Shown here: in pieces, positions 18,950 through 64,000 of the stretch
Layout: the number at the start of each line of letters is the position of its first letter
Position numbering within the stretch: the first letter of the stretch is position 1
DNA from: Neoechinorhynchus agilis
Taxonomy: Eukaryota > Animalia > Acanthocephala
Length of the DNA: 64,000 bases
Direction of reading: 5' to 3'
NCBI GenBank assembly: GCA_051530055.1
Contig: CM121341.1
Span: forward strand, 1,178,001-1,242,000
Position numbers and translations under genes: made by a program
The notes under the pieces: generated by a model
Seen by the model: only the letters and a program-made list of their open reading frames with translations
Told to the model about the DNA's origin: nothing
The model's database searches: none

Positions 18950-19650
18950 GGGATATTTTTCCTTCTTAGTCAAAATTAAACCTGATCTGCCTATTATCCC
19001 GGACCTAAACTGCATTTATAAATGAATCGATTTGTTTACATTCCATCTCTGGTTTCCATCACTGATATATAGTCCGTATTATTGGGATCTTTAGCTGACA
19101 TTATCCTAATAAATGGCCATGTGCACCCGTCCACGATTGTTTTGAGCGATCTTTGTTAAATTGGTGAGACAACCAGAAGGTGGCTTTAGATCAATGATCA
19201 AAGTGGCTTCCTTGAGAGCATCTAATAAACCATTAATATATCCGAAAATGTTGTTAAATAAACTCGCTCTAGAACAAGCCCCACAAAATAAAAAATATCC
19301 TTCGTACAGATGAGCGGATGGATAATGTGCGAAGAAATAATTTGATTAAAAATATGTATCATTAACAATAAAAAAATTGTGTAGATGAAAGTAGTGATCC
19401 CTGCGGAATTCCATTTTCGGAATCAGCTTCTCTGTGAGAAGGTAATTTAAAATGGTTGTTTGATGATACCCATATATAAAAATACAATATATAAAGCACC
19501 GGCAGCTCTGTTCAGATCCAGTTTAAGTAAAATTTTATTAATGCCAGTCACGTCATGAAAATAATAAGAAAACGCTACACAGTGCAGGGGTTACGAGCAG
19601 ACATATTTTAGCCTAAACCTTACTAATGGTGTACTGTAAAAACGAGCTGA
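18950..19650 (-). mobile_element. Highly degenerate LINE RT remnant
   Basis: LLKLDLNRA and ENGIPQGSLLSSTQF motifs on the minus strand; no intact ORF. Confidence 0.5.
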
Positions 19651-19690
19651 CAATACCAAACAAATAAAAAGAACTACTACACAAACTTTT

Positions 19691-19745
19691 TTAGATGACT
19701 GATGAGACGAGGTTTCCTCTTTCGAAATATTTCCTAATAATAAAG
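19691..19745 (+). ncRNA. Hammerhead-like motif copy (intact CTGATGA core); mirrored at ~63810-63865
   Basis: ttagatga-CTGATGAG-ac-GAGG-ttt-CCTC-ttt-CGAAATATTTC. Confidence 0.45.
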
Positions 19746-19799
19746 GAATCTTTAACCGGGATTATGTTCGCCAGCAATTGTGAATTCTCTAAGACCATT

Positions 19800-20560
19800 T
19801 CTTAGTGAAACAAAGAAATGGACTGCGATGAATTCTAAATCGGGGTTTTTGTAGAGAGCCTGTGAGAGATAAAGAGTAAGGTAGCCATTGCTGCACGAAA
19901 ATTGAGACTTCCCTTCTGGACAGTCCTGGCGGTTCATACGGAAGGAGGAGTACCCGGGAAGGATGATTCATTTGCTGTTGAAAGGCGGAGGGGGGTGTTA
20001 TTGTTAATATGACCACATCGGCTTTTGAAGTGGATGAAATTTCATCTAGTTTAGGGAGGAGGCTTCGGGTGTTGGAGTAGATTATGGCGGGAACTGAATT
20101 TTGGGTTTCTGTGTATTTGAGGTGGAAAATGAGGGAGATTGAGGTTCCTTTTGTCGTCGTGGATGATAAATTAAGGGAGGAACCGATACAAGTTTTCGAT
20201 CTTAAAGGATTTATTGTCCCAAAGAAAGAAGTGCAGGAGAGATTGGCAATATTATGAACGAGTTTTGATTTGAGAATTGATGTGGATCAGCCAGGATTGG
20301 ATATGCCAATTTGTAGTATATCCGTGTGGACATTGAGTGATAATTTTTTACTTGTTTCGAAAGGGAAACCGTTTTTAAAGTCGAAGGGCTCGGTGGTTGT
20401 CCTTTATAGTTTTTCGAGCGTCGATGGAGTTTATAAAATGGGTTCCCACAGTTTCGAAAAGGTGAATCGGTAAGATTTTGTTGCTCTACCCGAGCCACTG
20501 ATAGATACCGCGATGTCAAGTGTCGCAGAGCACAAAATGGCGGTTGGCTGTTGGTCATTA
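19800..20560 (-). mobile_element. LINE 5' fragment (ORF1 end / APE endonuclease start); mirrored at 62997-63760
   Basis: YSNTRSLLPKLDEI..ADVVILT resembles the APE N-terminus; C/A-skewed strand. Confidence 0.55.
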
Positions 20561-21848
20561 GGACAGGTCAAAGATTTAACTGGTTGGAACCAATATTCGT
20601 GGGAGATGTCATAAAAATCCTCATTCAGTAACTTACAACGGAGGATTGAACATGAGGCACGTCACTCTTCGTGATAAATCAGTAAACTTTATTTTAATAT
20701 CACTAAGCATCGTAATCAATAATGCCTAGAAAATGAACACGCATCGCCGACATCGTCCTTAGGGAGAAAATCGTACTTTGATTTTTTCAAATATAACACT
20801 TTTATAGTTCAATTCCTGAACATATATTTGTTTCTTTTGATGAGTGTTAATGAGTGGCCTGATTAAACAGGGATCTGCTCATTTCGTTTAGTTTTCTCCG
20901 TTGAAAATTTTTATTTTTGAGAATTCGTGAATTTTAATGAGGGTGCTAAAATCCATGACGAATATTTTTAGATATTTTACAATCGTAAATATATTAATTT
21001 CTTTTTAAGGAATGATATTTGCCAATCAGACGACGATTTACGCTACTTTTAAAAACACGTTCACGAAAATGAAGAAGTGAATGTACCATACCGTGTCGTC
21101 CTGAAATCGACATTGCAATGTCGGTCGATGTTTAGGATTTCCAACGATCAATTTTTATTATAAAAAAATGGTCAACGTTTTCTTTGAATTTCCGAATATT
21201 CGTTTCCGTATTCATTACAATTACCATTCAAGTATTTTAGAAACTTTAAGCATTTTAAAATGTAGAGTGGCGAAATCCGGACTGCAATTTCACAGCTAAC
21301 ATCTTTTAAAGTATGAATGCTTATTTCAAGTTTTTCGGATTACTTCTATACTTTTCACTGGAACAATAACTTTGTTATTAGGATTAGAAATATATGGTGC
21401 AGTTCTCATGAAAGGTACACGATATAAACTCCTTAAATATAAAATAATATAAAAGTCTAACAAGTTTGAATGGATCTTATTCCAAAGATATCGTTATGTA
21501 AGAAACAAGCGATTTACTATTGAGCAGACCATTCCATGGACAAGATAATAGCCGTGAACCGTTGTTGTCCAAGGTTATACATTGGCCGCAGTGTTTCAAG
21601 TGGAATGATGCGCACTATTTTCCAGGTTAAATGGTTGGGCAAAGCTTAAATGCGGTTATAAAAATCTGCCGAGAAAAATTCGAACTACTGACAGTTTCCA
21701 AGATAATGATTTGAGTTTAAATTTTAAACCATAATGCACAGATTAGAGAGCTTTGTAGAATTTAGATACTTTTTTTCAAGAAAAAGTTATTTAATAACAA
21801 AAAGTATATTAAATAGTAAAGCTCTCTCATTTGTTCCCTAACAAATTC

Positions 21849-22042
21849 TTTCTTTTGGTAGTTTTGCTATTCCGGATTTAAATTCACTAATTTATTTGCA
21901 TCATTTCACGTCCGATAATTCCGACATTTCCTCAAGACTTGCAATTGTTAGTTATTAAAAGATGCTCAAGATGACAAACCTTGATGTCGGAAATAAATTA
22001 GTGAATTTAAATCCGGGTTGGTAAAACTACCAAAAGAAAGTC
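21849..22042. mobile_element. MITE-like element, ~195 bp with ~50-bp TIRs; mirrored at ~61513-61706
   Basis: Perfect 26-bp IR ccggatttaaattcactaatttattt plus outer ~20-bp IR ctttcttttggtagtttt. Confidence 0.75.
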
Positions 22043-22343
22043 TATTTTCCCCCGAAGGCAAGAATCCAGGATATTAAAAAATTCGCTTAAATTTAATATG
22101 TAACATCATTTATTCACCTCTCAAAGAGTAGGATATTGAAAAACATTCCACAAAATCGTTTCAAAATTGGATTATGGTATTACTCTGATTTCATTAAAAA
22201 AATTTGGCACGGAGATGTGGATAGTGACAAAAATATGAACCCGTTAGCCGCTCCAATTTTTCATTGTCTTCTTTAAAATTCATTCGATTTTGCCTATGAT
22301 CCGCACAATGGCAATATTTAAAAGCGATTTTATCAAAAGATAC

Positions 22344-23019
22344 TTAAATTGAAACAAAAGCAATAACAAGTGCAACTAAAAGTGAAACTGTCATCTGAAC
22401 GGCATGGCCCACTTCCACAGCAGGGCACACAACACCCGGTGCCGCAACTCTGAAGGTATTTCCACCAATAACCCTTCGTTGTTTTGAGATAAATCCACTG
22501 AAATCCCAATTCAATCTTTCATTCACCGTGAACGGCTCAAGTTTTTTCTTTTGTTCTACCATGAGTTGGACATAATGATGAACACCAATCGGTGGTGCCG
22601 GTGCAAAATAATCCTTGATAACTGTGATAGGCGTTACTGAGTTCAGATTTATTCCAAGATAATGTAACCAAACAGTTGAGTTAGGAGCATTTGGCTCATA
22701 TACGTCCGGATCATACATAACGATGGAGTAATACCTTTGCTCGTCTTCTAATAGAGGGCCTTGATAAGTGAATTGATTTGTTGTTTCACTCATTGACATA
22801 CATGGATTCCAAGCGACGAGGCGATTGCTGTAGAAGGTCTGCGAGGAAAGTTGTAATTAATAAGTGAACCAGAAGATTAACAATTACCGGTAAGAAAGGA
22901 AAATTGAATTTTCTAACTCCATCCAAGTACCGTAGAGCCACTTTTGTATTTTGCGAAACTGGCGCCGAGCGGACAAGAGCTACCAATGCTATTGCAATGA
23001 ATGAATATAAAAGATGCAT
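22344..23019 (-). CDS. Secreted, probably GPI-anchored PEBP/RKIP/OV-16-family protein, copy 1; exons 23019-22918 and 22838-22344 (198 aa)
   Basis: Signal peptide MHLLYSFIAIALVALVRSA; YSIVMYDPD, WLHYLGIN, APAPPIGVHHY; hydrophobic C-tail; 79-nt phase-0 GT-AG intron. Confidence 0.85.
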
Positions 23020-23559
23020 TTTTGTTCAGAATCAGATACAGCCTAGCACAGTGAACACTTCTATATATTCATCACTATCATCATCACCATTGTGAATCAA
23101 CTATGTGGTTAAAGTTGTGATTCAGTCTTTTAGAAAAGATACAGGTTGCAAGCGAGTACAAAAGTTGCGAATTTTATAGCATCTAGGAGCAAACAGTAGC
23201 TTAAATGAACAGGGAAGGAAAGGCAGTTGTAACGATTACTTTAGCTCGTTGAATAAACAGCCTAAATGCACGTGATAGTGTTTGACTTGACGATGAAGAT
23301 GTAAGGCCATCGTTTTGAACTATAGCTTAAATATGTTTCTCGATTATCGAATAATTATTTGGACTAGAAAAAGTCCTTTTTGTTGGGAAACCTCATTTAG
23401 GAGCTGAGTATTTCTACATTACTCAAGATTTGAGAGGAATGCACAGAATGTCCGTTCAATGATTTATAACACATCGCGGATCGGTAGCTTTAAGCTAAAG
23501 TTATGTTTTCCTTCCATGTTGTTGGATGCAGCCCGGAATTGTGATCACTACATCTCCAA

Positions 23560-25350
23560 CTCTGTAATCCCGAAGGATTTTCTTTGAACGATACCAATAT
23601 TGGAAATGTAGTGACCATAATCTCTTCCGAATAAAACATATAAATTATTGAAATATTTCGTGAGGGAGCCTCATCTGTCATCTAAAAAGATTTTAGTTGT
23701 TTTGCACTGGATATTTCAGATCAAACACCTTGCGTGCGGGATTATAATTACCACATCTCCAACTCTATAATCCCGAATCATTTTCTTTGAACGATACCTA
23801 AATTGGAGATCTGATTATCACAATCTCTCCCAGACAAAATATATTTTATTGAAATATTTCGCGAGGAAGCCTCATAAGTCATCTAAATAAATTTTAGTCG
23901 TTTTGTATTGGATATTTCCGATCAAACCTCTTGCGAGCGGGATTATGATCACCACATCCCAATTTCAGTCACCACGAAGGATTTTCTTTGAACGATACCA
24001 AAATTGGAGATCTGATTATCACAATCTCTCTCGGATAAAACATATTTTATTGAAATATTTCGCGAGGAAGCCTCATAAGTCATCCAAATAAATTTTAGTC
24101 GTTTTGTAATGGATATTTGCGATCAAACCCCTTAAGTCCGGGATTATCATCACCACATCTCCAACTCTATAATCCCGAATCATTTTCTTTGAACGATACC
24201 TAAATTGGAGATCTGATTATCACAATCTCTCCCAGACAAAACATATTTTATTGAAATATTTCGCGAGGAAGCCTCATAAGTCATCTAAATAAATTTTAGT
24301 CGTTTTGTATTGGATATTTCCGATCAAACCTCTTGCGTGCGGGATTATGATCACCACATCCCAATTTCAGTCACCACGAAGGATTTTCTTTGAACGATAC
24401 CAAAATTGGAGATCTGATTATCACAATCTCTCTCGGATAAAACATATTTTATTGAAATATTTCGCGAGGAAGCCTCATAAGTCATCTAAATAAATTTTAG
24501 TCGTTTTGTAATGGATATTTGCGATCAAACCCCTTAAGTCCGGGATTATCATCACCACATCTCCAACTCTATAATCCCGAATCATTTTCTTTGAACGATA
24601 CCTAAATTGGAGATCTGATTATCACAATCTCTCCCAGACAAAACATATTTTATTGAAATATTTCGCGAGGAAGCCTCATAAGTCATCTAAATAAATTTTA
24701 GTCGTTTTGTATTGGATATTTCCGATCAAACCTCTTGCGTGCGGGATTATGATCACCACATCCCAATTTCAGTCACCACGAAGGATTTTCTTTGAACGAT
24801 ACCAAAATTGGAGATCTGATTATCACAATCTCTCTCGGATAAAACATATTTTATTGAAATATTTCGCGAGGAAGCCTCATAAGTCATCTAAATAAATTTT
24901 AGTCGTTTTGTAATGGATATTTGCGATCAAACCCCTTAAGTCCGGGATTATCATCACCACATCTCCAACTCTATAATCCCGAATCATTTTCTTTGAACGA
25001 TACCTAAATTGGAGATCTGATTATCACAATCTCTCCCAGACAAAACATATTTTATTGAAATATTTCGCGAGGAAGCCTCATAAGTCATCTAAATAAATTT
25101 TAGTCGTTTTGTATTGGATATTTCCGATCAAACCTCTTGCGTGCGGGATTATTATCACCATATCCCAATTTCAGTAACCACGAAGGATTTTCTTTGAACG
25201 ATACCGAAATTGGAGATCTGATTATATCAATCTCTCCCAGACAAAACATATTTTATTGAAATATTTCGCGAGGAAGCCTCATAAGTCATCTAAATAAATT
25301 TTAGTCGTTTTGTAATGGATATTTGCGATCAAACCCCTTAAGTCCGGGAT
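23560..25350. repeat. 201-bp tandem array with alternating A/B monomers (402-bp dimer), 9 core copies, each carrying a hammerhead-like core on the minus strand
   Basis: tcatc(t/c)aaa at 23678, 23879, 24080, 24281, 24482, 24683, 24884, 25085, 25286; near-identical ORFs recur every 402 bp. Confidence 0.97.
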
Positions 25351-25599
25351 TGTTGTGCGGATTAAACATCGAGACTCATTTTAATTGCTTAATATTTCGT
25401 CGACAAAATCCACCTCGTCAGACATCTACAAAATGGTTTATATACTGGTTACCTTAGACTCAGGAGCGCGGGTTAGCCGTGCCCGTGGAGTTAATGTCCG
25501 CTCGAACCCCCTGCGCAATGTTCGGCTTTCTTTCAGCTTTAAATCGTTGATTGGGAGCGCGAGACCTCCATTGTCCGGTTCGCTGCAATGTGTATGGCC

Positions 25600-25865
25600 T
25601 CATACACGAGTCTCCGCCTCCAGTTCGCTTCGGGCGGTTAAGGGGATATCCTAAGTGGGCTATTGATATGGCCAGAAAAATTATCAGGCGACAACCCGAT
25701 CAACGCAATAACGGTCAGCCAACGAATCTTCCACTTACAAAATATATCGCACATTCTTTCATCAGTGAAGAGGCCACTAACAAACTACGGACCTTACAAA
25801 GAATACAGAATTTGAGGATTATTGCCAAAAAAGGGACGACATTGGCTGGTTTTTGCAAAAAGAAG
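25600..25865 (+). mobile_element. Penelope-like RT thumb/linker fragment
   Basis: LRGYPKWAI..HSFISEEATNKL..RIIAKKGTTL parallels IRRYPKWII..HFVDDDTNQMI in the PLE at 228-1452. Confidence 0.6.
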
Positions 25866-28300
25866 ACCGCGACAACACCTACATGCGGAGTCTGCGGTTC
25901 CTGCCCAGGAACGTCCTGAAACGGATCCCTAAAGGCGCGCGATATCTGGTCGCCAAAGCATTTACGGGATTGCTCAACGATTGCCTTCAAACGAACTGTG
26001 CGCCATCATGGACACGGCTCTTCGCTTTCCCGCGCTTAGTCCTTTGCACCCGTGATGATTCTGGGGTGTCGTTGACATCAACAATCAAAGAAAGGGTGAC
26101 CTCCTTCGAACAAATATTTAACAATTTCGAAATGAAATTTCGAGAGGGTTCGTAAGGGACGCACGAAGGAAGGGGTTCGTTGCCGTTTTTCAAAGCGATC
26201 CCTGACTGAACGTGTCTCTTCGAAGCTTGCGGACGGAGATGTTCGGGGGGCTGTTCGGTTATTGTCATCCTATGACAGTTTTGCACAAGGAGACAACGTG
26301 GCACTACAAATACTCCGGTCAAAACACCCATGCAGTAGTGACAGTTTTGAAATTCCACCTCCTCCCATACAAAACAGGACACCCACTCAAATTTCAGAGA
26401 TAAAAAAGGCCATCTCAACTTTTGCAAATGGTTCGGGTCACGGGCTTGACGGACTAAGGCCTCAGCACCTAAAGGACATGATGTCCTTTTCAACTGGTGA
26501 AGCAGCTCTCTCTAGAAAGTGCGCTTTCTCGAATAGTCGACCGCCTGACTGGAGAGGACCTGAACCCAGTTGCAAAGGACCTATTTTTCGGAGCCTCATT
26601 GTGTGCGCTCACAAAAAAAGAAGGTGGGATCCGTCCCATCGCCGTATCTTCGACGATACGCCGACTCGCAGGAGAAAACCGGACAGCAACTTCGTCCAGT
26701 CCAACTGGGCTGCTGCACATCATGCGGGGCGGAAGCTATTGTCCACTCGCTCCGAAACTTTGCTACGAGAAGCTCAGAGCCGTGTGTGAATCTTAAGTGT
26801 GATTTTCAAATGCCTTTAACTCTCTTAATAGAGAAAGCATGTTCTGCGCTATTAGGGATTACTCACCAGAAGCCTTCCAGTCATTTCTCAATGCCTACGG
26901 GACCGCGACTTCTTTGCTTTTCGAAGACCACCTCATTTGGTCCGAAAGAGGAGTGCAGCGAGGAGATCCTCTCGGTCCAATCGCATTCTCCCTAACAGTA
27001 AATCCAATAGCGCATTCTCTCCATTCCAGCTTCAACTCTTGGTACTTGGGTGACGCTACGATCGGAGGTGATCCCTCCGTTGCACTGAGCGATTTGGAGA
27101 CGCTGATTAGGGAGAACTCGAGAATGGGCATTGAGCTCAATGCTGGAAAGTGTGAACTCCTAGAATTAAATATCGAAGACGCCGCTAAAGTCCAGGACCT
27201 AATGGATGGGTTCGAGGCCGTAGCTCCAGGTCTAAAACTCGTGACTCCAGAGCAACTCAGCCTTTTCAATAGTTGCGTCTTTGATTCAAATGTTGAAGCT
27301 GAGAGCGCTCTCTCGCTCACGAAGCCTTATTTCTGATAAAAAAAGCACTCTTTAACCCCAAATTTGGTCTGCACAGCAACATTCTTCAAAAATAAGGAAG
27401 GATTGGCTAAGCTCGACGGCAAGGTGAGGGCTTGTCTCGAGCGTATTTTAAATGTCCAGCTCTCAGGTGAGGCGTGGCGACAAGCTTCATTGCCTGTGTC
27501 ATCTGTGGGATTGGGCATTCGGGCGCTAGTAGACCTTGCCTTGCCAGCCTTTCTTGGATCGTATGAGGGGAGTCAACCGATAGCGAAGAAAATTCTGAGG
27601 GAAAAGTTTTGTCTTGACCAAGACATATGGTCTCAGTTGAAGAATGGTGCCAGCAGACAAGCGCTAACCATGTACCCGTGAATGGCCTCAGACAGTCGAT
27701 CGATCTGGAACAGACCTCTCGTCGCGAGAGCTCACAGCTCTCTACTTTCAGCTTCTCGCGATGGGGTCGTCCGAGATAGATTGTTGGCAGTTTCGACACG
27801 AGAATCGAGGGAGTGGTTAAAGGCTGTTCCTCTGGCACCTGTGGCAACTCTTCTCACTGATGAGGTAACGAGGATCGCAGTGTTCTTAAGACTTGGTCTC
27901 CCGATACACACGCCCCATCGCTGTCGATGTGGATCTTTGGTTGATGCTTTCAGGCTACATGGTCTCGTTTGTTGAAAGTCAGGTGGAAGGTTCTCACGCC
28001 ATTCTGAGATCAATAGCGTAATTTCTCGGGCGTAGAGAACGACGAACTTCGCTCGGCCTCTCGACCGAGTGCGTAACCCGCCCATCTTTGTCGACTGGCG
28101 CTTGACAGCTCGGCACTCACTGCTCCAGGATCTCTCGGAGAAACGACCGGCGACGCACAAGAAGGTGTATTCCTGCGATAAAATATCTCGCTCGCAGTAC
28201 AACGAGACAATGCTGTTAGCGTGATAGCGACAGCCGAGGAAGGAGAGAAGCTCCAATTTTGCGGAGGGTGGTGATTGCACGTTTTGTGCTTTATTTTGTA
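25866..28300 (+). mobile_element. CRE-clade non-LTR retrotransposon (RT + REL), frameshifted, with internal deletion in REL
   Basis: VLKRIPKGAR, GLDGLRPQHLKD, KKEGGIRP, ERGVQRGDPLGP, WYLGDA, QASLPV..GLGIR, LRLGLP..HRCRCG..HGLVC; ~215 bp missing relative to the 58.9-59.6 kb copy. Confidence 0.9.
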
Positions 28301-28440: not shown

Positions 28441-31046
28441 CTAAGATGATTGAGTGTCGGACGATGTATTTCCGGTAGATGAAGGTGGCTGATCTGACCC
28501 ATCTTTTTTCTTTTGTTCATTTTGCATCTTGATATAAGCCATTTCGAAAAGCTTAAGAGAATCTTTTTGTAGCTTATCAGCTGCTTGTTTAAGCTCTTTA
28601 GGATCTAAATTGGTTTGTTGCATTTTGGTTCTCAATTCCGCTACTTCTTGCTTCATTTTTTCATATTCATCAGAAGGGAGTTGATCTTTGAACTCTTCCA
28701 TCTTACTCTCACAATCATGAATGATACCCTCAACGCGGTTACGTTCTTCAATAGTCTCCCGTCTCTGTTTATCCTCACTTGCAAATTTCTCACTCTCCCT
28801 TACCATATTCTCAATGTCGTCCTTTGATAGACCCCCGGAGCTTTGAATTATAATCTGCTGTTCTCGGCCGGTTCCACGATCTCGGGCACTCACATTCACT
28901 ATTCCATTAGCATCAATATCGAACGTAACTTCGATTTGGGGAACGCCACGAGGGGCAGGGGGGATTCCAACAAGCATAAATTGCCCTAAAAGTTTATTGT
29001 ACGCCGCCATTTCACGCTCTCCTTGATAGACTTTAATTTCAACCTGAGTTTGCCCATCAGCCGCAGTTGAGAATACTTGAGATTTTTTTGTTGGGATTGT
29101 TGTGTTTCTTGTAATTAGTTTCGTAAATACTCCGCCCAAAGTCTCAATTCCAAGACTCAAAGGAGTCACGTCCAATAGCAAAACGTCAGTAACATCACCG
29201 GCCAACACAGCGCCTTGAACGGCAGCACCGATCGCAACCGCTTCATCCGGATTGACCGATTTACTCGGCTGTTTTCCACCGAAGACTTCCTGGACTACTT
29301 GTTGAACCTTTGGCATTCGAGTCATTCCTCCGACCAAAATAACTTCATTAATATCTTCTACTTTTACCTGAGCGTCTTTTATGGCCTTCTTGCACGGTTC
29401 AATCGTTCTTTTTATCAAGTCACTGACCAGATTCTCAAACTGAGCACGAGTTACCCGGACGTTCATGTGCTTAGGACCGGAAGCATCCACTGTAATGTAT
29501 GGAAGATTTACTTCAGTCTGAGTAGCACTAGATAACTCGCATTTCGCCTTTTCAGCAGCTTCACGCAATCTTTGCATTGCTTGAACATCCTTAGTCAAAT
29601 CAACACCGGAGTCCTTTTTGAATTCCGTCAATAAATAGTTCATTAAAACATTGTCAAAATCTTCGCCCCCGAGAAAAGTATCACCGTTTGTTGATCGAAC
29701 TTCAAATACGTTATTCTGAATTTCAAGAATACTGATGTCGAAAGTACCTCCACCTAAATCGTAAATGGCAACTATTTTATCCGATGAACTAGTTGATCCT
29801 TTCTCCAGACCGTAAGCCAAAGCAGCCGCGGTTGGCTCATTTATCACTCGCATAACGTTTAAACCGGCTATTTGACCAGCATCTTTTGTCGCTTGTCTTT
29901 GACTGTCATTGAAATAAGCAGGAACCGTTACGACGGCGTTCGACACTTTAATTTGCGATTTGACGACTTTTTGTCTTAAGAATCCAAGAAAAAACAACCA
30001 AAATCTATTAGCAACAATTAGGAAAAACAATGTATAGTTCCAATTTTTTATCAATACAAAATCGTTTGAAGATTGAACTATTTATGCTTGTTTACGGCGG
30101 AAAAAGTCCGATATTTCGCCACAATCGTGTAGCAACCTTGATAAAGGTATGAAATTGTGCCTCCGAAATATCGGATCTAACCAAAATTCCTTTAATTTTT
30201 ATGCACTTGGAATCACGTCAAAGATCACAATTCTATATACAAAATCAATATAAACTTCCAATAAATCGGCATTAAATATCGCACATAGCCTACATTTTAT
30301 CGGATATTAAGAAATCGAAAATGAAAAAATCATCCAACAAAATGAGAAAGCATTACGTTGATTTCTTTAAAAAATTCGCTTTGTAATTTAAAATAGAACG
30401 CAAAGCAGAAATACCGGGGATGAGTAGAAAACTACGAGGCTATTTTCGATATTAAAAGCGAAAATCAACGGGATAATTTGTTTCTCGGCAAATAATTTGA
30501 AATAGTTTATACGAAAAAGTTTGGCAAATTCGAAAATTGTTTAAAATCGCCAATGCGCATTTTATTGCCGAAATACGCCTCTGCGGTTTCCTTCATCTTT
30601 CCTAAGACGAATCCACCAACCTGACTGGGTGAATACAGTTTCCCGTTGGCACTTTCAACCCAAGCATCGCCATTGGACGACCTTACAATCTTGAAACTCA
30701 CGTTCTTCATCTCTTTTTGTACTTCGCTATCATCAAATCGGCGTCCAATAAGTCGTTTAGTGGCATAAAACGTATTTTGTGGATTAGTAACGGCCTGACG
30801 CCTCGCCAACATTCCAACTAATCGTTCTCCACCGTCCTTCGAAAATGAAACAACCGATGGAGTCGTTCGCATTCCTTCGCTATTCTCAATAACTTTGGCT
30901 TGCTTACCTTCCATCACTGCAACACACGAATTCGTCGTTCCCAAATCAATTCCGATCACATTGGAAGAAGCAGCAGTACTCTTTAGACGACTGTTAAAGG
31001 AGCGAAGATTCCTGATCAAAGCCTGGGATCGAAGTGTTGACATCAT
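28441..31046 (-). CDS. HSPA9: Mitochondrial HSP70 (mortalin), split by a ~614-bp insert at 29947-30560 with unclear splice sites
   Basis: Basic/hydroxylated presequence, [64 protein letters not shown]; no EEVD tail. Confidence 0.93.
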
Positions 31047-35830: not shown

Positions 35831-35888
35831 TTTTCGAGAATCTAAAATGTAACCAGCGTTTATGGAAAGGGAACATTGACAGAAAATC

Positions 35889-50756: not shown

Positions 50757-50813
50757 GATTTTCTGTCAATGTTCCCTTTCCATAAACGCTGGTTACATTT
50801 TAGATTCTCGAAA

Positions 50814-52695: not shown

Positions 52696-53799
52696 ATCTG
52701 TGCAACCAATTATCCAAATTCCTAATAAAAGTTATAAAGAAATACTTTCATGCAAGCTTCTCTTTAAAATGCGGTGGTTTTAATCTGAGGTGTTCCTTGG
52801 ACGAACTGGACAAGTAAAGCACCGCCGAGCTTACAGTGAAATCTTTTTAATAAAAATTTGGTGAAATTGTAACAAAAAGAGTGCGTTTCTTTTGAAACCG
52901 TCAAAGCTAATTGAATTCTATATTTATAAAATGCGCTGTAAATTTTTCTTACTTTTTTTACTCTTGCGATAATAATAAAAATCAAATCCACACGTTTTCA
53001 TACCAGTCAATTAGTTCAAGCGTAGTATTTTATTTGCGTTTTATTGTCTTTAACGTTTCATATTTTTTACCGAACATTTTAAGCTCCGTTCATCTTACCC
53101 GAAATCCTTTAACCGAGCGATCTGAACTTCGATTGCATCATCAGCGATCCTGTTCTCAAAAAACTTTATATCTGAAAACCAAATCAATACGGCATTTAGG
53201 TGATATTTCTTATTTTAATAAAAATATCTTTTATGTTATCAAGTTCGTTATTCCATCCGAATTTCTGCGATTTTAAGTTCCATTCTATCGTTTTGCTTTG
53301 AAGCGGTTTAGCCGGCATCCAACAAAAGTTAAAAAACTTGATTAGCGGATTGACCGGTTTCCTTCAAGCTTACTGATTTAGCCCATATCCATAAACAGCA
53401 ACATTATAATTATTTTCAAAAAAATATTATTTTCAAGGTAATGTTTGTATTGACGAGATCATCAATTGAATAGAGCCCAAGAGATTTTCCTTTGCGAGTA
53501 AAGGCAAGGCTCTTTTTTTTAATACATCTAATGAGTATCGATTTTCGCTGACGAACTCTCATTGTGAAAACTTTCTCTCTGAGAGATTTTTGTGCCACTG
53601 TGAACTCAACCAACAAATTACTTTTCGTCGATTCACAGCAATCACTTCATTCTACAGAGAAAAGAGCGACGATGACATCGGTATATCAAAATCGAACTTA
53701 AAAATCTTTACGAATTTTTCCTGTGGATTCGCATTTGCAAAGACTGGAAGGGTGGCGTGAGAGATTGGAAAGCAACGGAATCAAAGTAAACAGAGCGAA

Positions 53800-54135
53800 T
53801 ACAGGTTCGGAGGATCTAGAATGAGATGCCAAACAATTAACATTAAAAGCGTCAGTTCAATATCTTGGTAGCAAGGTCAGTATGGCCAACTCTCTCAAAC
53901 CTAAAATAACTCCCCGAATACAAAGCCGATGGCACAACTGGATAAAAATGTCAACCGTATTCTGTATGTGATAAAAGGATCGGGCTAAAGCCAAAAGGAT
54001 CGGAGTATTCGAGACTGTAGTGAGACCAACAATGTTGTACGCCGCAGAGACGTGGACGACCAAGAAAGACGACCTCAGTCGATTAGAATCGAATGAAATG
54101 AGGATGTTGAGATGGGCAGCTGGCTTCACATTCAG
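53800..54135 (+). mobile_element. RTE-clade RT C-terminal fragment
   Basis: TVVRPTMLYAAETWTT..EMRMLRWAAG. Confidence 0.75.
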
Positions 54136-54359
54136 GGAGCTCAAAGAAGATTGCGGTTGTTCAATAAGGTTATGAATAGCGAGAGAAGGCATATAAGCAT
54201 AGAGGATATTGGAAAGGCGGCGCAGAGGAAGACTCAAGAAGCGTTGGGTGGATTGTGTAAATCAAGATCGAAGTTAAATTGGACTCAACATTTTTCACCA
54301 AATAGATGTAATATTAGGACCCGCAACCTCTCGAAAGAGGGAAAAGCGTGAGAATATGA

Positions 54360-54600
54360 AGTCTTCCATTCTTTCCTTCGAATCAATTTGCATTTGGAGG
54401 ATTAAGCAGCGGGGAAGAAGGATCGAAGGTAGAGGTTTGTGCGAGGAAATGAAGGATGGAAAATGTTGGGGCGACGCGAGCGGAGGATAATGAAAGCGCT
54501 TTTGAGTGCTTTTGAAAGATTAGAGAAGTTAGTTCTTCTAAGGGCAGGAGTTCGGAGGAACAGATTTGAGCGCACCTCTTGTGAAATGTGTTAGGTTTTT
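54360..54600 (-). mobile_element. 3' fragment of the CR1/L2-like LINE family seen at 14060-15450
   Basis: Reverse complement aligns with ~15170-15410. Confidence 0.65.
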
Positions 54601-57350
54601 TGCTCGCCAAGGACAATCCAAGCCCGGCTGAAAAAGGAGGAGGGTTGGCGTCATGAAGGGCATCCAGCTGTAAAATTCTTGCCAAATTTTGACCCAAATG
54701 ACAACCAGCAACCGAATCAACCAAAGCACTAAGGCTGCGACGCGCAAGTTCTTCGCCTGGAGCTTGTGTTAAATCATCAAAGGCTACCGAGGCATGGACG
54801 GTTTCGGCTAAAGAAATTATTCTACACAAGTGACCTAAGAATAGCAACGCTAAATGTGGGATCGATGACGGGAAGGAGTCGAGAAATAGTTGATGAGAAG
54901 GATCGGCATAGTGGGAGTGCAGGAGACCAGTTGGAAAGGAGCGAAAGCCCATGAACTAGGCGATGGTTATAAAATAATCTATAGTTGCGAGTCAAGTGGC
55001 AGGAGTGGGGTGGGAGTCATCATGGAAAAAGGACTAGTCGATTGCGTTTTGGAAGTGATCAGAACAAATGGTGGGATCATATCGGTGCGATTCGATTTAG
55101 GAGGAGAGGATGCCACCATAATATCGGTCTATGTCCTGCAAATCGCATGTACAGAGGAAGAGAAACAGCAGTTTTGGCAAAGCTTATCGGATACTGTTGC
55201 GAACTCGAAGAGCACTCGTTATGCGATTACAGGAGAGTTTAATGGACATGTGGGAAACAGAGACGGTTACCAGCGAATGCATGGTGGGCACAGCATTGGT
55301 GAACGAAACGCCGAAGGTGAAAAGCTTCTCTACTTGGCCGTTTCAAGAGAACTGCGACTGGCGAACACGTTTTTCCAAAAAGAGGATAGGCATATTACTA
55401 TTTATTCGAGCGGTGGATAATCTAGTCAAATTGATTTCATCCTTTATCCGATATTACGATGGAGCGAAATAAAGAACGTCAAAACGATTCTCGGAGAAGA
55501 TTGAGTACCACAACACCAAGTAGTAGTAGCAGACTTGACGATCAGAACAAAGAGGAAACGGTATGCCGGAAAGTGAATCCTCAAGTCAGGTGGTGGTTGC
55601 TAAAGGATACTGAGCCTTGAAAACGAGTTGGTGAATCGCTAATAAGTAAGCTGGAAATGGAGGTTGACTGTTCAGATGTATACGGTGGAACGAATGATCA
55701 AAACTAATTCTGGAGGGTGGAACGGCGAAAGAGATATGCTAAGAAGATATGATATCAGGCTCGAACAGTTGCAAATGCGCGATTGCAAAGAGAGGCGGAT
55801 AGAGAGATCTATGAGGTACTAGAAAAAGGCAATGGGAGTGGAAAGATCTTCAAGATCGCAGAAATTCGCGACAAAAAGTCAAAGGATATTTCCTCAAGCG
55901 AAAACGAGGTTCTTCTAAGACGGCGAGAGTATTTCGATAAACTCTTGAATGCAGAGAATCCGCGACAATCCAGCGAGGAGGCACCATCATACGCGAATGC
56001 AGTGAGACCGTTATCCTATAACGAAGTTGCGAGACAGCTTGGACGCATGAAATTGGGGAAAAGCGCAGGACCGGATGGTATCCCGATCGAAATATGGAAA
56101 GCGTTGAGCAGTTTTGGTATCCAAGTGTTGACGAATCTATATCAAAGAATATCACAAATCGGGAAAATGCCCGGAGCACGGCCAGAAAGGAGATATTGAA
56201 CAATGCAGTAACTATAAGGGCATAAAGATTATGAGTCACACAATGTAACTATATGAAAGGCTTCTAAACAGTAGGCTGAGAGAAGAGATCAGTGTCGGAG
56301 AACATTAGAGAGGTTTTATGCCAGGGCGGAGCACAACAGAAACGATATTTCTAATCATACAATTGTACGAGAGGTACAATGAAAAACAGAAGCCGCTATA
56401 CAGTGCATTCGTGGACATCGAGAAAGCCTGTGATGCAGTGCCGAGAGACCCAACATGGGCGTGCCTCAGAAAGAACTGTCTCGAGGAATACATAAGAGCA
56501 ATGTAGATCATTTACGAAGGATCCTGCACTTGTGTCAGATGCGGTGTGTTAGAGACAAACTGTTTTGAGGTTACAGTTGGATTGCATCAGGGATCAGCCC
56601 TCAGCCCGTTCCTATTCGTCACGATCATGGATGTGTTGGATTCTAAGCAAATCGCCCGAAAGCCTCCATGGACACTATTGTTCGCTGATGACTTGATTGT
56701 GACAGTTGAAACACGTGAAGAGGCTCAGCGAAGTCTGGAAGGGTGGAGTGAAGCACAGGTTGAAGACGATATGGATGGGACCGGAAGCGCTAAAGTTAGA
56801 AGGTGTAGATTTGACGATGAGAAGAACAGTGAAATATCTAGGCAGCGAAATAAATATGACAAATTCCCTCGAACCCGAAATAACTGCTCGTATACAAAGC
56901 GGGTGGCTCAGACAAAAGGATCTCACCCAAAACGGATAGGGCTGGTGTTCGAAACCGTGGTGCGACCAGCCATGTTATATTGCGCAGAAACTTGGACGAC
57001 CAAGCGAAACGACCTCAGAAGATTAGAAACGAACGAGCTGAGGATGCTGAGATGGGCAGCAGGGTACACTCTCAAGGATAAGAAAAGAAATGCGGACATC
57101 AGGGAGCTGTTCGGCACTTGCCGCTGTTCAGAGTTGATCGTCCAAAGAAGGTTGCGCTGGCACGACAAAGTTTCGAAGTGCGAAGCAGATCACATACTGC
57201 GCAGCACGAAGAAACTGGAAATAAGGGGAAATTGCCGACGAGAAAGGCCGAGGAAACGATGAGTGGATTGCATCAAACAGAATAAATTGGTTTTCGAGAG
57301 AACCGTAACCTCTCTCTCGAGAGCGAGAGAAAATGCGTGAGTGAGAAGAA
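54600..57350 (+). mobile_element. Near full-length but decayed RTE-clade LINE
   Basis: APE (VQET, GEFNGHVG, LANTFFQK), RT (KSAGPDG, FVDIEKA, GLHQGSALSP, LLFADD, KYLG, RPAMLYCAETW); frameshifts and deletions. Confidence 0.88.
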
Positions 57351-58929
57351 GGATAAATCGTGAAGATAGCTTGTTTTGATGAAAGTGAGATGAATTCTAG
57401 TTTATTTAATATTTCGCCCTCTGCGTGAAACTTCTTCAGAATTGCAAATTGCTTCGAGATAAAAGCGAAAGTTATGAAGCAATTTTTCTCCTTTGTCGCG
57501 AAACACAAACAATTCTGATGAAGTTTCTCGTAAAGGACGAAATATTAAAATTGAATTACTTCTATTCTCATCTCTCGCCCTCATCTCGCCAATAGATAAA
57601 TTGTTTAAAGATTGAATTATTCTGATGCTTATTTATGATGGCTAAAATTATAGGAATTTCGATTAAATCCGATTGTTTCCGAAGGCACATTCTTGTACAC
57701 CTTTATCAAAGTTGCTTGTAAGTTGGCACATGATTTATCGCCTCATTGTCGAATTTACCGAAATTCCTTTAATTTTTAGCCGCCATAAACAAACATTGGA
57801 TGAATAATTTTTAAAGCCTTAAAGACGATTTATCGCTCGAAAAAAATAATAGCTAGTTTAACGCCTAAAACTTTCTCGTTCTCACTAGTTTAATTGCCTC
57901 AATTCTGTACCATGAAGAAATTCTCGATTTCTAGCGTAGCCTAACAATACATTTGATCGATATTTCAGTTTTGACTAAAGAAATGTTTTTAACAAGATCT
58001 ATAAAAAATTAAATTCATCGACTTGCATGATTTACCGAGTAGAAAATCGCAATTTCTTACTTTATTTCACCGAAATTCCCATTTGAAGAAACGAATGTTT
58101 ATTTTAAATTTTCTTGTACAAAATCCATCAGAACGTGATCGAAAGTTAAAATTCATGATTGTAATTTTGATTCGGTATAAAAAAGCTTTCAAGACCCGAA
58201 CGTTTTATGCATAATCTTTATTTGTATACTCAATTCTTCGTTCCTATTATAAAACCGATCTTTTCTCTTTAGAGTAAAAATAGTTTTTCTCACCATTGAG
58301 ATAATTGGTGATGTTTTACTAAGCATGGTAAATTTTTTAACCAAGGTTGGAAACGGATGGTCGAAATGAACAAATCTGCGATTCAAAAAGGTACTGATGG
58401 ATCCTCGAGAAAATGAAGGATAAAAATGTTTCGGCGTTAGCATCGGAACTTTTTTAAATTAGAGAAATAACACGTTTTAATCAAATTCTTTAAGAATTCA
58501 GAACTATAAATTTAAAATAGAATCATAGGATGGCGGCGGTTCAAACTCGTTGCTGATCTCTTGTACACTGAGTCTTGGATTCCCTAATGGATCTGACAGT
58601 TGGTCGAAATGGTGCATCTGATAATGAGTCAATCGCCCATGAATTGTAGAAGTTTGATTATTGATTCCATTCAGCACACATCGCCTAATTGACGATTTAA
58701 TTTAGTTTTGACCCACGATACTAACCACACGCAAGCAGATAATATGATTGTTAGAATTATGGCTGCTAAAGGTGGAAAAAAAATCACTATCCATGACGAT
58801 GGAGAGGATGACATTCTCGGTTTGAGGTGCAATGATGAAATACATCTTTGTTGGAGTAATGTGACTCATTGCTCCTCTCCTGTGCTACGAAAATTTAAAT
58901 GGGGTCGAAAAACTGTGTTTTGGGTAACT

Positions 58930-59645
58930 TTTTAGCAAAAGCCTTTGAGAGATGGCAGCATTGCTTCGTTGTACTGCGATCGGGATATTTTGTCGCAGGA
59001 ATACACCTGCTCGTGCGTCGCCGGTCGTTTCTCCGAGAGATCCTGGAGCAGAGAGAGTGCCGAGCTGCCGAGCGCTCCATACGTCTCTACTCCGACGGGG
59101 ACAAAAAAGTGGGCCCTTGCTAATTCTCTATATTTTCGTACCTTCCTCCCTTCTGCTGCAATGGCTGCACCTTCAGGGATTTCGAGAGAGTACGGAATGT
59201 TGCTTACGGCGAGCGTGTCCACACACGTGGCGTCCCAGAGAAGGCATTTGCCATCCCGCCACGGAGACCGTGTAGTCGACAAAGATGGGCGGGTTACGCA
59301 CTCGGTCGAGAGGCCGAGCGAAGTTCGTCGTTCTCTACGCCCGAGTAATTACGCTGTTGATCTCAGAATGGCGTGAGAACCTTTTACCTGTCTTTCAACA
59401 AACGAGACCATGTAGCCTGAAAGCATCAACCAAAGATCCACATCGACAGCGATGGGGCGTGTGTATCGGGAGACCAAGTCTTAAGAACACTGCGATCCTC
59501 GTTACCTCATCAGTGAGAAGAGTTGCCACAGATGCCAGAGGAACAGCCTTTAACCACTCCCTCGATTCTCGTGTCGAAACTGCCAACAATCTATCTCGGA
59601 CGACCCCATCGCGAGAAGCTGAAAGTAGAGAGCTGTGAGCTCTTG
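58930..59645 (-). mobile_element. CRE-clade 3' portion, near-identical to 27720-28210 but retaining the full REL core
   Basis: LRLGLP..HRCRCG..HGLVC, PWRDGKCLLWDATCVDTLA, FVPVGVETYG. Confidence 0.85.
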
Positions 59646-59679
59646 CGATTCAGGTGCTTGCGATGGCTCTACAAAACAA

Positions 59680-59915
59680 CTAAAATCTTTTTAGATGACT
59701 GATGAGGTTTCCTAACGAAATATTTCAATAATTTATGTGTTTTATCCGGGAGGGATTTTGATGACCAGATCTCCGATTTCGGTATCGTTCAGAGAAAATC
59801 CTCCGTGATGACTGAAATGGAACACAAGAGGTTTGATCGGAAAGATGCAGTACAAAACAGCTGAAATCTTTTTAGATGACAGATGAGGCTCCCTCACGAA
59901 ATATTTCAATAATTT
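59680..59915 (+). repeat. Two units of the hammerhead-like repeat (CTGATGAG at 59699, CAGATGAG at 59880)
   Basis: The 59880 unit mirrors the 23678 unit; the 59699 unit is a distinct variant with an intact core box. Confidence 0.7.
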
Positions 59916-60534
59916 ATATGTTTTATTCGGAAGAGATTATGGTCACTACATTTCCAACTTTGGTATCGTTCAAAGAAAATCCTTCGGGATTACAGAGTTG
60001 GAGATGTAGTGATCACAATTCCGGGCTGCATCCAACAACATGGAAGGAAAACATAACTTTAGCTTAAAGCTACCGATCCGCGATGTGTTATAAATCATTG
60101 AACGGATATTCTGTGCATTCCTCTCAAATCTTGAGTAATGTAGAAATACTCAGCTCCTAAATGAGGTTTCCCAACAAAAAGGACTTTTTCTAGTCCAAAT
60201 CATTATTCGATAATCGAGAAACATATTTAAGCTATAGTTCAAAACGATGGCCTTACATCTTCATCGTCAAGTCAAACACTATCACGTGCATTTAGGCTGT
60301 TTATTCAACGAGCTAAAGTAATCGTTACAACTGCCTTTCCTTCCCTGTTCATTTAAGCTACTGTTTGCTCCTAGATGCTATAAAATTCGCAACTTTTGTA
60401 CTCGCTTGCAACCTGTATCTTTTCTAAAAGACTGAATCACAACTTTAACCACATAGTTGATTCACAATGGTGATGATAGTGATGAATATATAGAAGTGTT
60501 CACTGTGCTAGGCTGTATCTGATTCTGAACAAAA

Positions 60535-61210
60535 ATGCATCTTTTATATTCATTCATTGCAATAGCATTGGTAGCTCTTGTCCGCTCGGCGCCACTTTCG
60601 CAAAATACAAAAGTGGCTCTACGGTACTTGGATGGAGTTAGAAAATTCAATTTTCCTTTCTTACCGGTAATTGTTAATCTTCTGGTTCACTTATTAATTA
60701 CAACTTTCCTCGCAGACCTTCTACAGCAATCGCCTCGTCGCTTGGAATCCATGTATGTCAATGAGTGAAACAACAAATCAATTCACTTATCAAGGCCCTC
60801 TATTAGAAGACGAGCAAAGGTATTACTCCATCGTTATGTATGATCCGGACGTATATGAGCCAAATGCTCCTAACTCAACTGTTTGGTTACATTATCTTGG
60901 AATAAATCTGAACTCAGTAACGCCTATCACAGTTATCAAGGATTATTTTGCACCGGCACCACCGATTGGTGTTCATCATTATGTCCAACTCATGGTAGAA
61001 CAAAAGAAAATACTTGAGCCGTTCACGGTGGATGAAAGATTGAATTGGGATTTCAGTGGATTTATCTCAAAACAACGAAGGGTTATTGGTGGAAATACCT
61101 TCAGAGTTGCGGCACCGGGTGTTGTGTGCCCTGCTGTGGAAGCGGGCCATGCCGTTCAGATGACAGTTTCACTTTTAGTTGCACTTGTTATTGCTTTTGT
61201 TTCAATTTAA
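60535..61210 (+). CDS. Secreted PEBP-family protein, copy 2; exons 60535-60636 and 60716-61210
   Basis: Mirror of 22344-23019 with four substitutions. Confidence 0.85.
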
Positions 61211-64000
61211 GTATCTTTTGATAAAATCGCTTTTAAATATTGCCATTGTGCGTATCATAGGCAAAATCGAATGAATTTTAAAGAAGACAATGAAAAATTG
61301 TAGCGGCTAACGGGTTCATATTTTTGTCACTATCCACATCTCCGTGCCAAATTTTTTTAATGAAATCAGAGTAATACCATAATCCAATTTTGAAACGATT
61401 TTGTGGAATGTTTTTCAATATCCTACTCATTGGGAGGTGAATAAATGATGTTACATATAAAATTTAAGCGAATTTTTTAATATCCTGGATTCTTGCCTTC
61501 GGGGGAAAATAGACTTTCTTTGGGTAGCTTTACCAACCCGGATTTAAATTCACTAATTTATTTCCGACATCAAGGTTTGTCATCTTGAGCATCTTTTAAT
61601 AACTAACAATTGCAAATCTTGAGGAAATGTCGGAATTATCGGACGTGAAATGATGCAAATAAATTAGTGAATTTAAATCCGGAATAGCAAAACTACCAAA
61701 AGAAAGAATTTGTTAGGGAACAAATGAGAGAGCTTTACTATTTAATATACTTTTTGTTATTAAATAACTTTTTCTTGAAAAAAAAGTATCTAAATTCTAC
61801 AAAGCTCTCTAATCTGTGCATTATGGTTTAAAATTTAAACTCAAATCATTATCTTGGAAACTGTCAGTAGTTCGAATTTTTCTCGGCAGATTTTTATAAC
61901 CGCATTTAAGCTTTGCCCAACCATTTAACCTGGAAAATAGTGCGCATCATTCCACTTGAAACACTGCGGCCAATGTATAACCTTGGACAACAACGGTTCA
62001 CGGCTATTATCTTGTCCATGGAATGGTCTGCTCAATAGTAAATCGCTTGTTTCTTACATAACGATATCTTTGGAATAAGATCCATTCAAACTTGTTAGAC
62101 TTTTATATTATTTTATATTTAAGGAGTTTATATCGTGTACCTTTCATGAGAACTGCACCATATATTTCTAATCCTAATAACAAAGTGATTGTTCCAGTGA
62201 AAAGTATAGAAGTAATCCGAAAAACTTGAAATAAGCATTCATACTTTAAAAGATGTTAGCTGTGAAATTGCAGTCCGGATTTCGCCACTCTACATTTTAA
62301 AATGCTTAAAGTTTCTAAAATACTTGAATGGTAATTGTAATGAATACGGAAACGAATATTCGGAAATTCGAAGAAAACGTTGACCATTTTTTTATAATAA
62401 AAATTGATCGTTGGAAATCCTAAACATCGACTGACATTGCAATGTCGATTTCAGGACGACACGGTATGGTACATTCACTTCTTCATTTTCGTGAACGTGT
62501 TTTTAAAAGTAGCGTAAATCGTCGTCTGATTGGCAAATATCATTCCTTAAAAAGAAATTAATATATTTACGATTGTAAAATATCTAAAAATATTCGTCAT
62601 GGATTTTAGCACCCTCATTAAAATTCACGAATTCTCAAAAATAAAAATTTTCAACGGAGAAAACTAAACGAAATGAGCAGATCCCTGTTTAATCAGGCCA
62701 CTCATTAACACTCATCAAAAGAAACAAATATATGTTCAGGAATTGAACTATAAAAGTGTTATATTTGAAAAAATCAAAGTACGATTTTCTCCCTAAGGAC
62801 GATGTCGGCGATGCGTGTTCATTTTCTAGGCATTATTGATTACGATGCTTAGTGATATTAAAATAAAGTTTACTGATTTATCACGAAGAGTGACGTGCCT
62901 CATGTTCAATCCTCCGTTGTAAGTTACTGAATGAGGATTTTTATGACATCTCCCACGAATATTGGTTCCAACCAGTTAAATCTTTGACCTGTCCTAATGA
63001 CCAACAGCCAACCGCCATTTTGTGCTCTGCGACACTTGACATCGCGGTATCTATCAGTGGCTCGGGTAGAGCAACAAAATCTTACCGATTCACCTTTTCG
63101 AAACTGTGGGAACCCATTTTATAAACTCCATCGACGCTCGAAAAACTATAAAGGACAACCACCGAGCCCTTCGACTTTAAAAACGGTTTCCCTTTCGAAA
63201 CAAGTAAAAAATTATCACTCAATGTCCACACGGATATACTACAAATCGGCATATCCAATCCTGGCTGATCCACATCAATTCTCAAATCAAAACTCGTTCA
63301 TAATATTGCCAATCTCTCTTGCACTTCTTCCTTTGGGACAATAAATCCTTTGAGATCGAAAACTTGTATCGGTTCCTCCCTTAATTTATCATCCACGACG
63401 ACAAAAGGAACCTCAATCTCCCTCATTTTCCACCTCAAATACACAGAAACCCAAAATTCAGTTCCCGCCATAATCTACTCCAACACCCGAAGCCTCCTCC
63501 CTAAACTAGATGAAATTTCATCCACTTCAAAAGCCGATGTGGTCATATTAACAATAACACCCCCCTCCGCCTTTCAACAGCAAATGAATCATCCTTCCCG
63601 GGTACTCTTCCTTCCGTATGAACCGCCAGGACCGTTCAGAAGGGAAATCTCAATTTTTGTACAGCAATGGCTACCTTACTCTTTATCTCTCACAGGCTCT
63701 CTACAAAAACCCCGATTTAGAATTCATCGCAGTCCATTTCTTTGTTCCACTAAGAAATGGTCTTAGAGAATTCACAATTGCTGGCGAACATAATCCCGGT
63801 TAAAGATTCCTTTATTATTAGGAAATATTTCGAAAGAGGAAACCTCGTCTCATCAGTCATCTAAAAAAGTTTGTGTAGTAGTTCTTTTTATTTGTTTGGT
63901 ATTGTCAGCTCGTTTTTACAGTACACCATTAGTAAGGTTTAGGCTAAAATATGTCTGCTCGTAACCCCTGCACTGTGTAGCGTTTTCTTATTATTTTCAT

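Follow-up and report, generated by a model that had tools for sequence, protein, structure and literature searches.

Is the large mirrored structure on a chromosome of the acanthocephalan Neoechinorhynchus agilis a real inverted duplication or a fold introduced during assembly, and, if it is real, how have its two arms come to share only part of their sequence? The palindrome lies ~1.2 Mb from the start of chromosome CM121341.1 (19,375,080 nt; assembly GCA_051530055.1). We analysed a stretch of 64 kb (the window, CM121341.1:1,178,001-1,242,000, to whose numbering coordinates refer) together with a 7.2-kb extension (locus L007, 50535-71210) and a distal stretch of 35 kb (107690-142971), so that ~107 kb of the chromosome were read. 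Our data make it very probable that an inverted duplication of ~50 kb really exists at this locus. The fuller reading that we prefer, a real inverted segmental duplication with a history of an old fold-back, conversion between the arms, loss of parts of the arms and copying of daughter pieces to other sites, receives a probability of roughly two in three; observed are the anatomy, the identity mosaic, the chimeric copies and the contigs at the centre, whereas we infer that the duplication arose once, that conversion caused the mosaic, and in which order genes originally lay and events took place.

Anatomy and gene content of the palindrome

Using an exact-seed repeat search and gapped self-BLAST, we recovered every mirrored block that had been described in an earlier note on this DNA, in colinear order around a short spacer. 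The blocks, with edges from self-BLAST, are as follows (the right-arm copies are called A' to D' in the text):

19555-23907 (left) and 64000-59670 (right), inverted: block A
27722-28215 (left) and 59648-58956 (right), inverted: block B
35829-38465 (left) and 50816-48181 (right), inverted: block C
38464-41603 (left) and 45493-42716 (right), inverted: block D
41604-42715: spacer of 1112 nt, asymmetric and AT-rich

In total, 12,355 nt can be aligned in nine segments, all in mirrored colinear order and with an overall identity of 97.8%. With lengths in the kilobase range and identities of 84-99%, the blocks cannot resemble each other by chance. The suspicion that the match runs on beyond the end of the window proved right, as 64001-66354 corresponds to 19554-17203 at 99.1%. 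It is followed by an outermost pair of 188 nt (66360-66549 versus 16948-16761) with 91.5% identity, and in the left arm an extra piece of 254 nt lies between the extension of block A and this outermost segment. Outward of 16761 and 66549, neither blastn nor tblastx between the flanks found any similarity; the two outer flanks are mutually unrelated and unique. The self-comparison including flanking sequence, which the earlier note had proposed as a check, gives a palindrome of 49.8 kb (~16761-66549) with defined edges and arms of 24.8 and 23.8 kb, roughly half of each being alignable.

Gene names and gene models (ACOME3 numbers) are those of the NCBI annotation, which lists eleven genes, ACOME3_000201 to ACOME3_000211, with PEBP-like twins at both ends; protein families were assigned with Pfam. 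In place of the four duplicated genes claimed before, we find three annotated pairs, and only the PEBP-like gene is full length on both sides:

22344-23019 (main open reading frame, ORF, 22344-22799), minus strand: PEBP-like gene ACOME3_000201 in block A of the left arm, with a PBP match in Pfam
60535-61210, plus strand: PEBP-like gene ACOME3_000211 in block A' of the right arm, product of 208 aa
37248-38093, minus strand: protein kinase, the shorter left copy in block C, 252 aa, with a Pkinase match in Pfam
47923-49397, plus strand: protein kinase, the longer right copy in block C', 294 aa, with the start of its model inside segment U2
44747-46807, plus strand: Cys-motif ORF of the right arm, an annotated gene of 686 aa that spans D' into U2
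38650-39405, minus strand: truncated left copy of the Cys-motif ORF in block D, 251 aa

The products of the PEBP-like twins have 208 aa each and are identical at 204 of the 208 residues. These four residue differences stand against ~4-5 nucleotide differences in the surrounding DNA, numbers too small for a test; with so few differences around the twins, most or all of those within the gene change the protein. The 686-aa ORF carries four CX2CX16CX2C motifs at residues 223, 301, 417 and 568, and the left copy ends after the first of them. A search of Pfam returned no family for this ORF even at E<=5, and we dropped a "GATA-like" label because it would rest on the spacing of the Cys motifs, which resembles GATA fingers. 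Contigs of RNA type from three samples match 44600-45299 with 0-2 differences over up to 13 sites that discriminate between the arms. In addition, a minus-strand GT..AG joint (39413-39520) is seen in RNA-type contigs and corresponds to an intron of 106 nt (39414-39519). Block B (27722-28215) has neither an annotated gene nor a Pfam family. An exact-protein look-up of the ORFs 60755-61207 and 11316-12020 found no called gene on record.

Between the shared blocks, each arm holds DNA of its own:

23534-25351: satellite of 201/402 bp, nine units in the left arm and fewer than two units in the right arm (59670-60023), found by Tandem Repeats Finder and self-BLAST
25352-27721: segment U1, of the two arms only in the left; a reverse-transcriptase fragment with RVT_1 in ORF 26839-27336
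28441-31046, minus strand: mitochondrial HSP70 (HSPA9/mortalin type), left arm only, product of 667 aa
31468-35828, plus strand: Ty3/gypsy-type retroelement, left arm only, with many frame breaks, abutting block C exactly
45494-48180: segment U2, of the two arms only in the right; contains the 686-aa ORF except for its 5' third, and the beginning of the kinase model of this arm
50817-53736, plus strand: region of an ECD/SGT1-like gene, absent from the left arm
53737-58955: retroelement debris, right arm only, with RVT_1 in ORF 56546-57262 and a gypsy-like piece at 54694-55289

The ORFs of the HSP70 gene match the Pfam family HSP70 with E=1e-209 and 7e-54, and the best matches among solved structures are to 'Stress-70 protein, mitochondrial' (E=5e-234). 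Successive ORFs of the gypsy element contain the domains RVT_1, RT_RNaseH_2, Integrase_H2C2 and rve. Two ECD ORFs (51203-51532 and 52012-52695) give colinear matches to PF07093, at its positions 71-158 and 438-516; neither match reaches the gathering score. Since the arm-specific DNA consists largely of retroelement and satellite sequence, most of the "cargo" to which the earlier note had drawn attention is transposon or satellite DNA. Its statement that the arms hold different single-copy genes stands in part: HSPA9 occurs in the left arm only, also within the whole ~107 kb, and of the two arms only the right one has ECD, but ECD is not single-copy. An ECD ORF of 227 aa is present in identical form a second time on CM121341.1, and two further ECD copies lie 55-70 kb away in tandem units, where the 2.7 kb of 50300-52997 recur with 99.85% identity.

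Some features of the window have no part in the duplication. Just outside the left edge begins the open frame of a gene with an RRM domain:

16208-16753, minus strand: open frame of the RRM-domain gene, with an RRM_1 match in Pfam

Further out in the left flank, a satellite of 173/346 bp occupies 6072-8977 with ~8-15 units that match at 91-94%. A tRNA search of the window found none.

Identity mosaic and chimeric copies

The two arms are not equally similar along their length. Block A is 99.30% identical (19555-23540 versus 64000-60020) and its extension 99.11% (17203-19554 versus 66354-64001). In block B, identity is 98.1% at 27722-28096 and 91.5% at 28098-28215 toward HSPA9, and the right arm has 197 extra nt. 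Block C is 99.39% identical to 50816-48181, including ~1.5 kb with a single mismatch, and its last 137 nt drop to 93%. The strongest variation is found in block D, with 85% next to the U2 breakpoint (38466-38668), 96.6% in the middle (38851-40863; local range 91-100%) and 85.9% in the innermost ~500 nt (41082-41603); the left copy of this block also carries several insertions of 12-195 nt each. Measured over 100 nt to 250 nt, local identity between the arms ranges from 83 to 100%. The mismatches are clumped, with an index of dispersion of 7.4, and 57 of 119 bins of 100 nt are free of mismatches where 14.6 would be expected. Wherever identity is low (85-92%), the segment is cut off by an indel, adjoins the spacer or forms the outer edge. 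On the other hand, identity stays at 99% or more as far as the break at the sharp edges 27722 and 35829, which suggests recent events. The simplest reading of this pattern is that of one old duplication in which exchange between the arms may have kept long uninterrupted blocks homogeneous, with conversion as the presumed cause of the mosaic.

Further information comes from the distal 35 kb, which contain a satellite of 206 bp, two tandem units with a period of 14.5 kb that are 98.9% alike (copies d1 and d2), and an older third copy (d3). Each tandem unit combines the right half of the spacer, block D and 681 nt of block C with an inverted copy of 50300-54938, that is the end of C', ECD and the start of the debris, at 99.4-99.85%. 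For the debris part alone (53736-54938), both units reach 99.4-99.8%. In these units a cut at 54938 interrupts the gypsy-like piece, which is fused there to position 37784 of block C. The older copy d3 has the order D, U2, B, U1 at 82-96%, with 86-89% for U2, and positions 31767-34519 of the distal stretch correspond to 28050-25350 at 87-96%, continuous through the junction of B and U1. Segment U2 is absent from the left arm and from d1 and d2. The arm-specific junctions are found again outside the palindrome: the U2-less junction of D and C from the left arm and the junction of C' and ECD from the right arm both recur in the distal tandem copies, and the junction of D' and U2, which lies inside one ORF of 686 aa, recurs in d3.

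An alignment of the five D copies, scored at the informative positions at which the arms differ, revealed that d1 and d2 are chimeric. From the spacer to ~44060, 134 of the first 135 informative sites are of right-arm type and one is of left-arm type, and the copies are 99-100% identical to the right arm. Outward from ~44060-44300, the sites are mostly of left-arm type, including the U2-less junction of D and C. A crossover between the arms inverts the centre, so that right-inner sequence becomes joined to left-outer sequence, as is the case in d1 and d2. The chimerism is the footprint of an exchange between the arms, probably by crossover, with a long conversion tract as the alternative explanation. 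Either d1 and d2 were copied from a flipped isomer, or the present palindrome was flipped later. The palindrome is one element of a scrambled, duplication-rich neighbourhood. The description as a "nested" palindrome is better replaced by that of one colinear duplication with uneven homogenisation, surrounded by a larger group of copies in direct and in inverted orientation. As a separate observation, a third partial copy of block A at 20046-20676 of locus L007 (70580-71210) is 98.4% identical to 62931-63561 and is cut by the end of the fetched locus. It is direct relative to the right arm and does not fit the direct, inverted, direct pattern of an inverted triplication, which we considered as a candidate and rejected.

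Taken together with the gene content, these data allow a probable history to be proposed. One old duplication of fold-back type would have placed a copy head-to-head around a short asymmetric spacer, starting from the gene order Cys-motif gene, kinase, ECD, mitochondrial HSP70, B and PEBP-like gene. From the segment order D, U2, C, ECD, HSP70, B, U1, A, one or two deletions would suffice to give each of the three present arrangements. In the time since, conversion and crossing-over from arm to arm would have kept long uninterrupted stretches at 99-100%, while isolated short segments would have drifted to 85-92%. Insertion of retroelements, expansion of the satellite and deletions would then have differentiated the arms and left each of them with the sole good local copies of some genes: HSP70 in the left arm, and in the right arm ECD together with the full-length forms of the Cys-motif gene and of the kinase. 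Finally, parts would have been copied to sites 45-80 kb further on, two daughter copies being composed of right-type inner and left-type outer sequence.

Parts of the same evidence can be read in another way, namely as a real but young palindrome of less than ~1% divergence that has not experienced long-term homogenisation, with the diverged patches imported by ectopic conversion from other copies in the cluster, or the blocks derived from several duplications that differ in age. At least three further D-type copies nearby, with 88-100% identity, are possible donors for conversion, and the mixture of direct and inverted copies with complex joins (such as C' at 48861 to an inverted 54938) would fit repeated replicative template switching; the sharp edges at 27722 and 35829, with 99% identity to the break, also agree with a young age. 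Against this, separate events would each need a mirrored and colinear landing, the ~107 kb contain no donor for 41082-41603 or for the outer-edge segment, and all segments of low identity are either terminal or cut off by an indel, positions at which a conversion tract would be expected to break off. We regard a young or multi-event origin as quite unlikely. A different extension of the old, homogenised duplication would be that the palindrome is an active recombination hub, in which the centre flips through crossover of the arms, both isomers may still segregate among worms and chimeric pieces repeatedly feed a growing tandem array, bounded by satellites, 45-80 kb away. We hold this to be unlikely, if somewhat less so. 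If it were true, the 150-kb region would represent ongoing amplification driven by a fold-back on an ordinary animal chromosome, and the complementary retention of essential genes (HSP70 versus ECD, kinase and Cys-motif gene) would block the loss of either arm.

The centre of the palindrome and the reliability of the assembly

The spacer contains two fragments of block C in the orientation of C': 41630-41741 equals 36852-36741 at 80.5%, and 42340-42541 equals 36575-36377 at 92.6%, which means that arm sequence from ~5.5 kb away either served to build the centre or invaded it. For the earlier note, the reality of the structure depended, among other things, on reads that cross 41.6-42.7 kb. As read evidence, we used Logan contigs on the central region from a DNA run (X1), a further sample (X4) and the three RNA-type samples. 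The short-read X1 contigs, which are contigs and not long reads, tile 41100-44150 with 0-2 differences and bridge both junctions of the spacer, thereby covering the central 3 kb only; their ranges are 41321-42017 (no differences), 42017-42342, 42593-42943 and 42914-44150. In sample X4, one contig matches the left-specific stretch 40839-40989 exactly, and contigs of left type and of right type occur together in each of the three RNA-type samples across the discriminating sites. The word depth of the X1 contigs, which is not a copy number, amounts to 138 in the left inner arm and the left part of the spacer, 227-408 in its right part and 515-556 in the right inner arm. This ratio of ~1:2:4 fits extra right-type copies in the distal array, perhaps with one more copy.

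Two observations on the X1 contigs stand by themselves. At 42017, contigs from both sides enter ~34 letters that are missing in the assembly; the extra piece of ~38 nt holds a perfect palindrome of 15 nt (CACGAATAATTCGTG) and represents an indel between run and assembly near the geometric centre. Besides, a contig that joins 40013 to 44150 on opposite strands was considered as an alternative structure and rejected, because the arms are 100% identical at 39793-39995 and 44158-44360 and the piece fits either arm.

Several points weigh against the reading that we prefer. X1 has no contig of at least 98% on the left inner arm at 40100-41100, and the mirrored stretch on the right is covered; this hole is probably a collapse of arms that are 97.5-99% identical into one contig, with a polymorphism as the less likely cause. 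The left-type RNA contigs could derive from the distal copies, which are of left type in that part. The check by reads is limited to the central 3 kb, and X1 may be one of the libraries used in the assembly. With respect to the history, the first 595 nt of the gypsy element (31468-32062) recur at 54694-55289 with 98.3% identity in direct and not in mirrored orientation, for which simple reciprocal loss offers no explanation. A tblastx comparison of the arm-specific DNA found no trace of HSP70 on the right or of ECD on the left; apart from the shared gypsy-like piece it returned only one weak match of 36 aa, so that reciprocal loss is a supposition and not an observation. The way in which the genome was assembled belongs here as well. 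The assembly of 46.2 Mb, of which 94% are in three scaffolds, was built in the hybrid mode of MaSuRCA from Illumina and Oxford Nanopore (R9.4) reads, for which ~50 worms had been pooled, and from additional data on single females, followed by purge_dups, scaffolding on Hi-C data by instaGRAAL with joins of 10 N, manual curation and TGS-GapCloser (PMC12690905). After purge_dups, BUSCO duplicates amount to 1.8-2.7%, indicating low haplotypic duplication genome-wide (PMC12690905). We counted zero N in the window and its 7.2-kb extension (1-71210) and in the distal 35 kb; as gaps were closed with TGS-GapCloser, a sequence free of N is no proof of a single contig.

A rival reading is that of an assembly artefact, in which the arms would be alternative haplotypes of the pooled worms, or an unpurged haplotig that Hi-C scaffolding placed in inverted orientation before gap closing, and nothing more than a small inverted repeat at the centre would really exist. 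A hybrid of ~50 worms, scaffolded by Hi-C and gap-closed, offers the opportunity for such an error; the hole on the left inner arm and the confinement of the contigs to the centre leave room for it, and the difference of no more than 0.6-0.9% in blocks A and C is plausible between alleles. There is also a precedent in rotifers, since the palindromes of the first Adineta vaga draft were artefacts of the erroneous scaffolding of phased haplotypes (PMC8494291). The two cases are alike in that they come from related groups (Rotifera sensu lato), show mirrored colinear gene blocks and were assembled from heterozygous material. Unlike the Adineta palindromes, that of N. agilis has no N gaps, a diverged centre supported by reads, differing flanks and a non-allelic gene content.

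It is on these features that the artefact meets its difficulties. The contigs put diverged left-inner and right-inner sequence on one molecule, and inner arms that are only 84-86% alike cannot be collapsed or mis-joined alleles. Each arm leaves the centre via junctions of its own, and these are either found again in other copies or contained in ORFs. Allelic arms would mean a haplotype with no mitochondrial HSP70. The palindrome has two different unique flanks, does not fold back to the end of a contig and has no N at the join, gaps having been closed though. The divergence is uneven (identity 83-100%, dispersion index 7.4), where alleles should differ to a roughly even extent. Both arm types occur in each of the three RNA-type samples, a finding that the distal copies confound. 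In view of this evidence, we consider an assembly artefact to be very unlikely, and an inverted duplication remains our reading of the locus. The earlier description of a "real, repeatedly remodelled fold-back amplicon" can be kept as far as "real" and "remodelled" are concerned, on account of the diverged and asymmetric centre, the spacer contigs, the outer edge, the insertions and deletions specific to each arm, the patchy identity and the chimeric copies. A read artefact of fold-back type, like allelic arms, would hardly account for these. The word "amplicon", which implies a raised copy number of the arms, is not supported.

Comparison with known palindromes and significance

The palindromes of the human and primate X and Y chromosomes undergo gene conversion between their arms, with arm identities above 99.9%. 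In common with these, the N. agilis locus has two colinear inverted arms of tens of kb, genes in the arms and a non-duplicated spacer, and its arms show exchange and the footprint of a flipped spacer as expected from crossover between the arms. In contrast, its arms are 97.8% identical overall and 83-92% in places, only about half of each arm is shared, and one partner is truncated in the kinase pair (252 versus 294 aa) and in the Cys-motif pair (251 versus 686 aa). The proposed likeness to sex-chromosome amplicons thus fails on identity (97.8% overall versus ~99.9% or more), and with one truncated copy in two of three pairs, the idea of a palindrome that maintains its duplicated genes does not hold either. 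The genome paper of N. agilis names no sex chromosome (PMC12690905). We came across no sign of sex linkage or of expression specific to the germline, no search aimed at these having been made.

In kind, the structure is an ordinary rearrangement, an inverted segmental duplication. Fold-back inversions arise from breakage-fusion-bridge cycles or from replicative template switching (fork stalling and template switching, FoSTeS; microhomology-mediated break-induced replication, MMBIR). The head-to-head duplication, the short asymmetric spacer with an arm-derived fragment and the inverted joins in neighbouring copies are features in common with such events; in contrast to them, neither a terminal deletion nor a telomere-proximal break is visible at this locus. 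As the event is old and has been overprinted, microhomology at the junctions can no longer be read.

General knowledge of palindromes is unchanged by this locus. New at this locus are the extension of the palindrome to 50 kb, including its edge, its connection to the distal cluster, the dependence of identity on edges and the chimeric daughter copies. For work on N. agilis it follows that estimates of copy number or expression need care for HSP70, ECD, the kinase and the PEBP-like gene, since these lie in a duplication-rich region of an assembly from pooled worms. If long reads confirm the structure, the locus would document within a small space the ageing of a large inverted duplication, holding homogenised interiors beside diverged segments isolated by indels, the complementary loss of partner genes and, in its daughter copies, a past flip of the centre.

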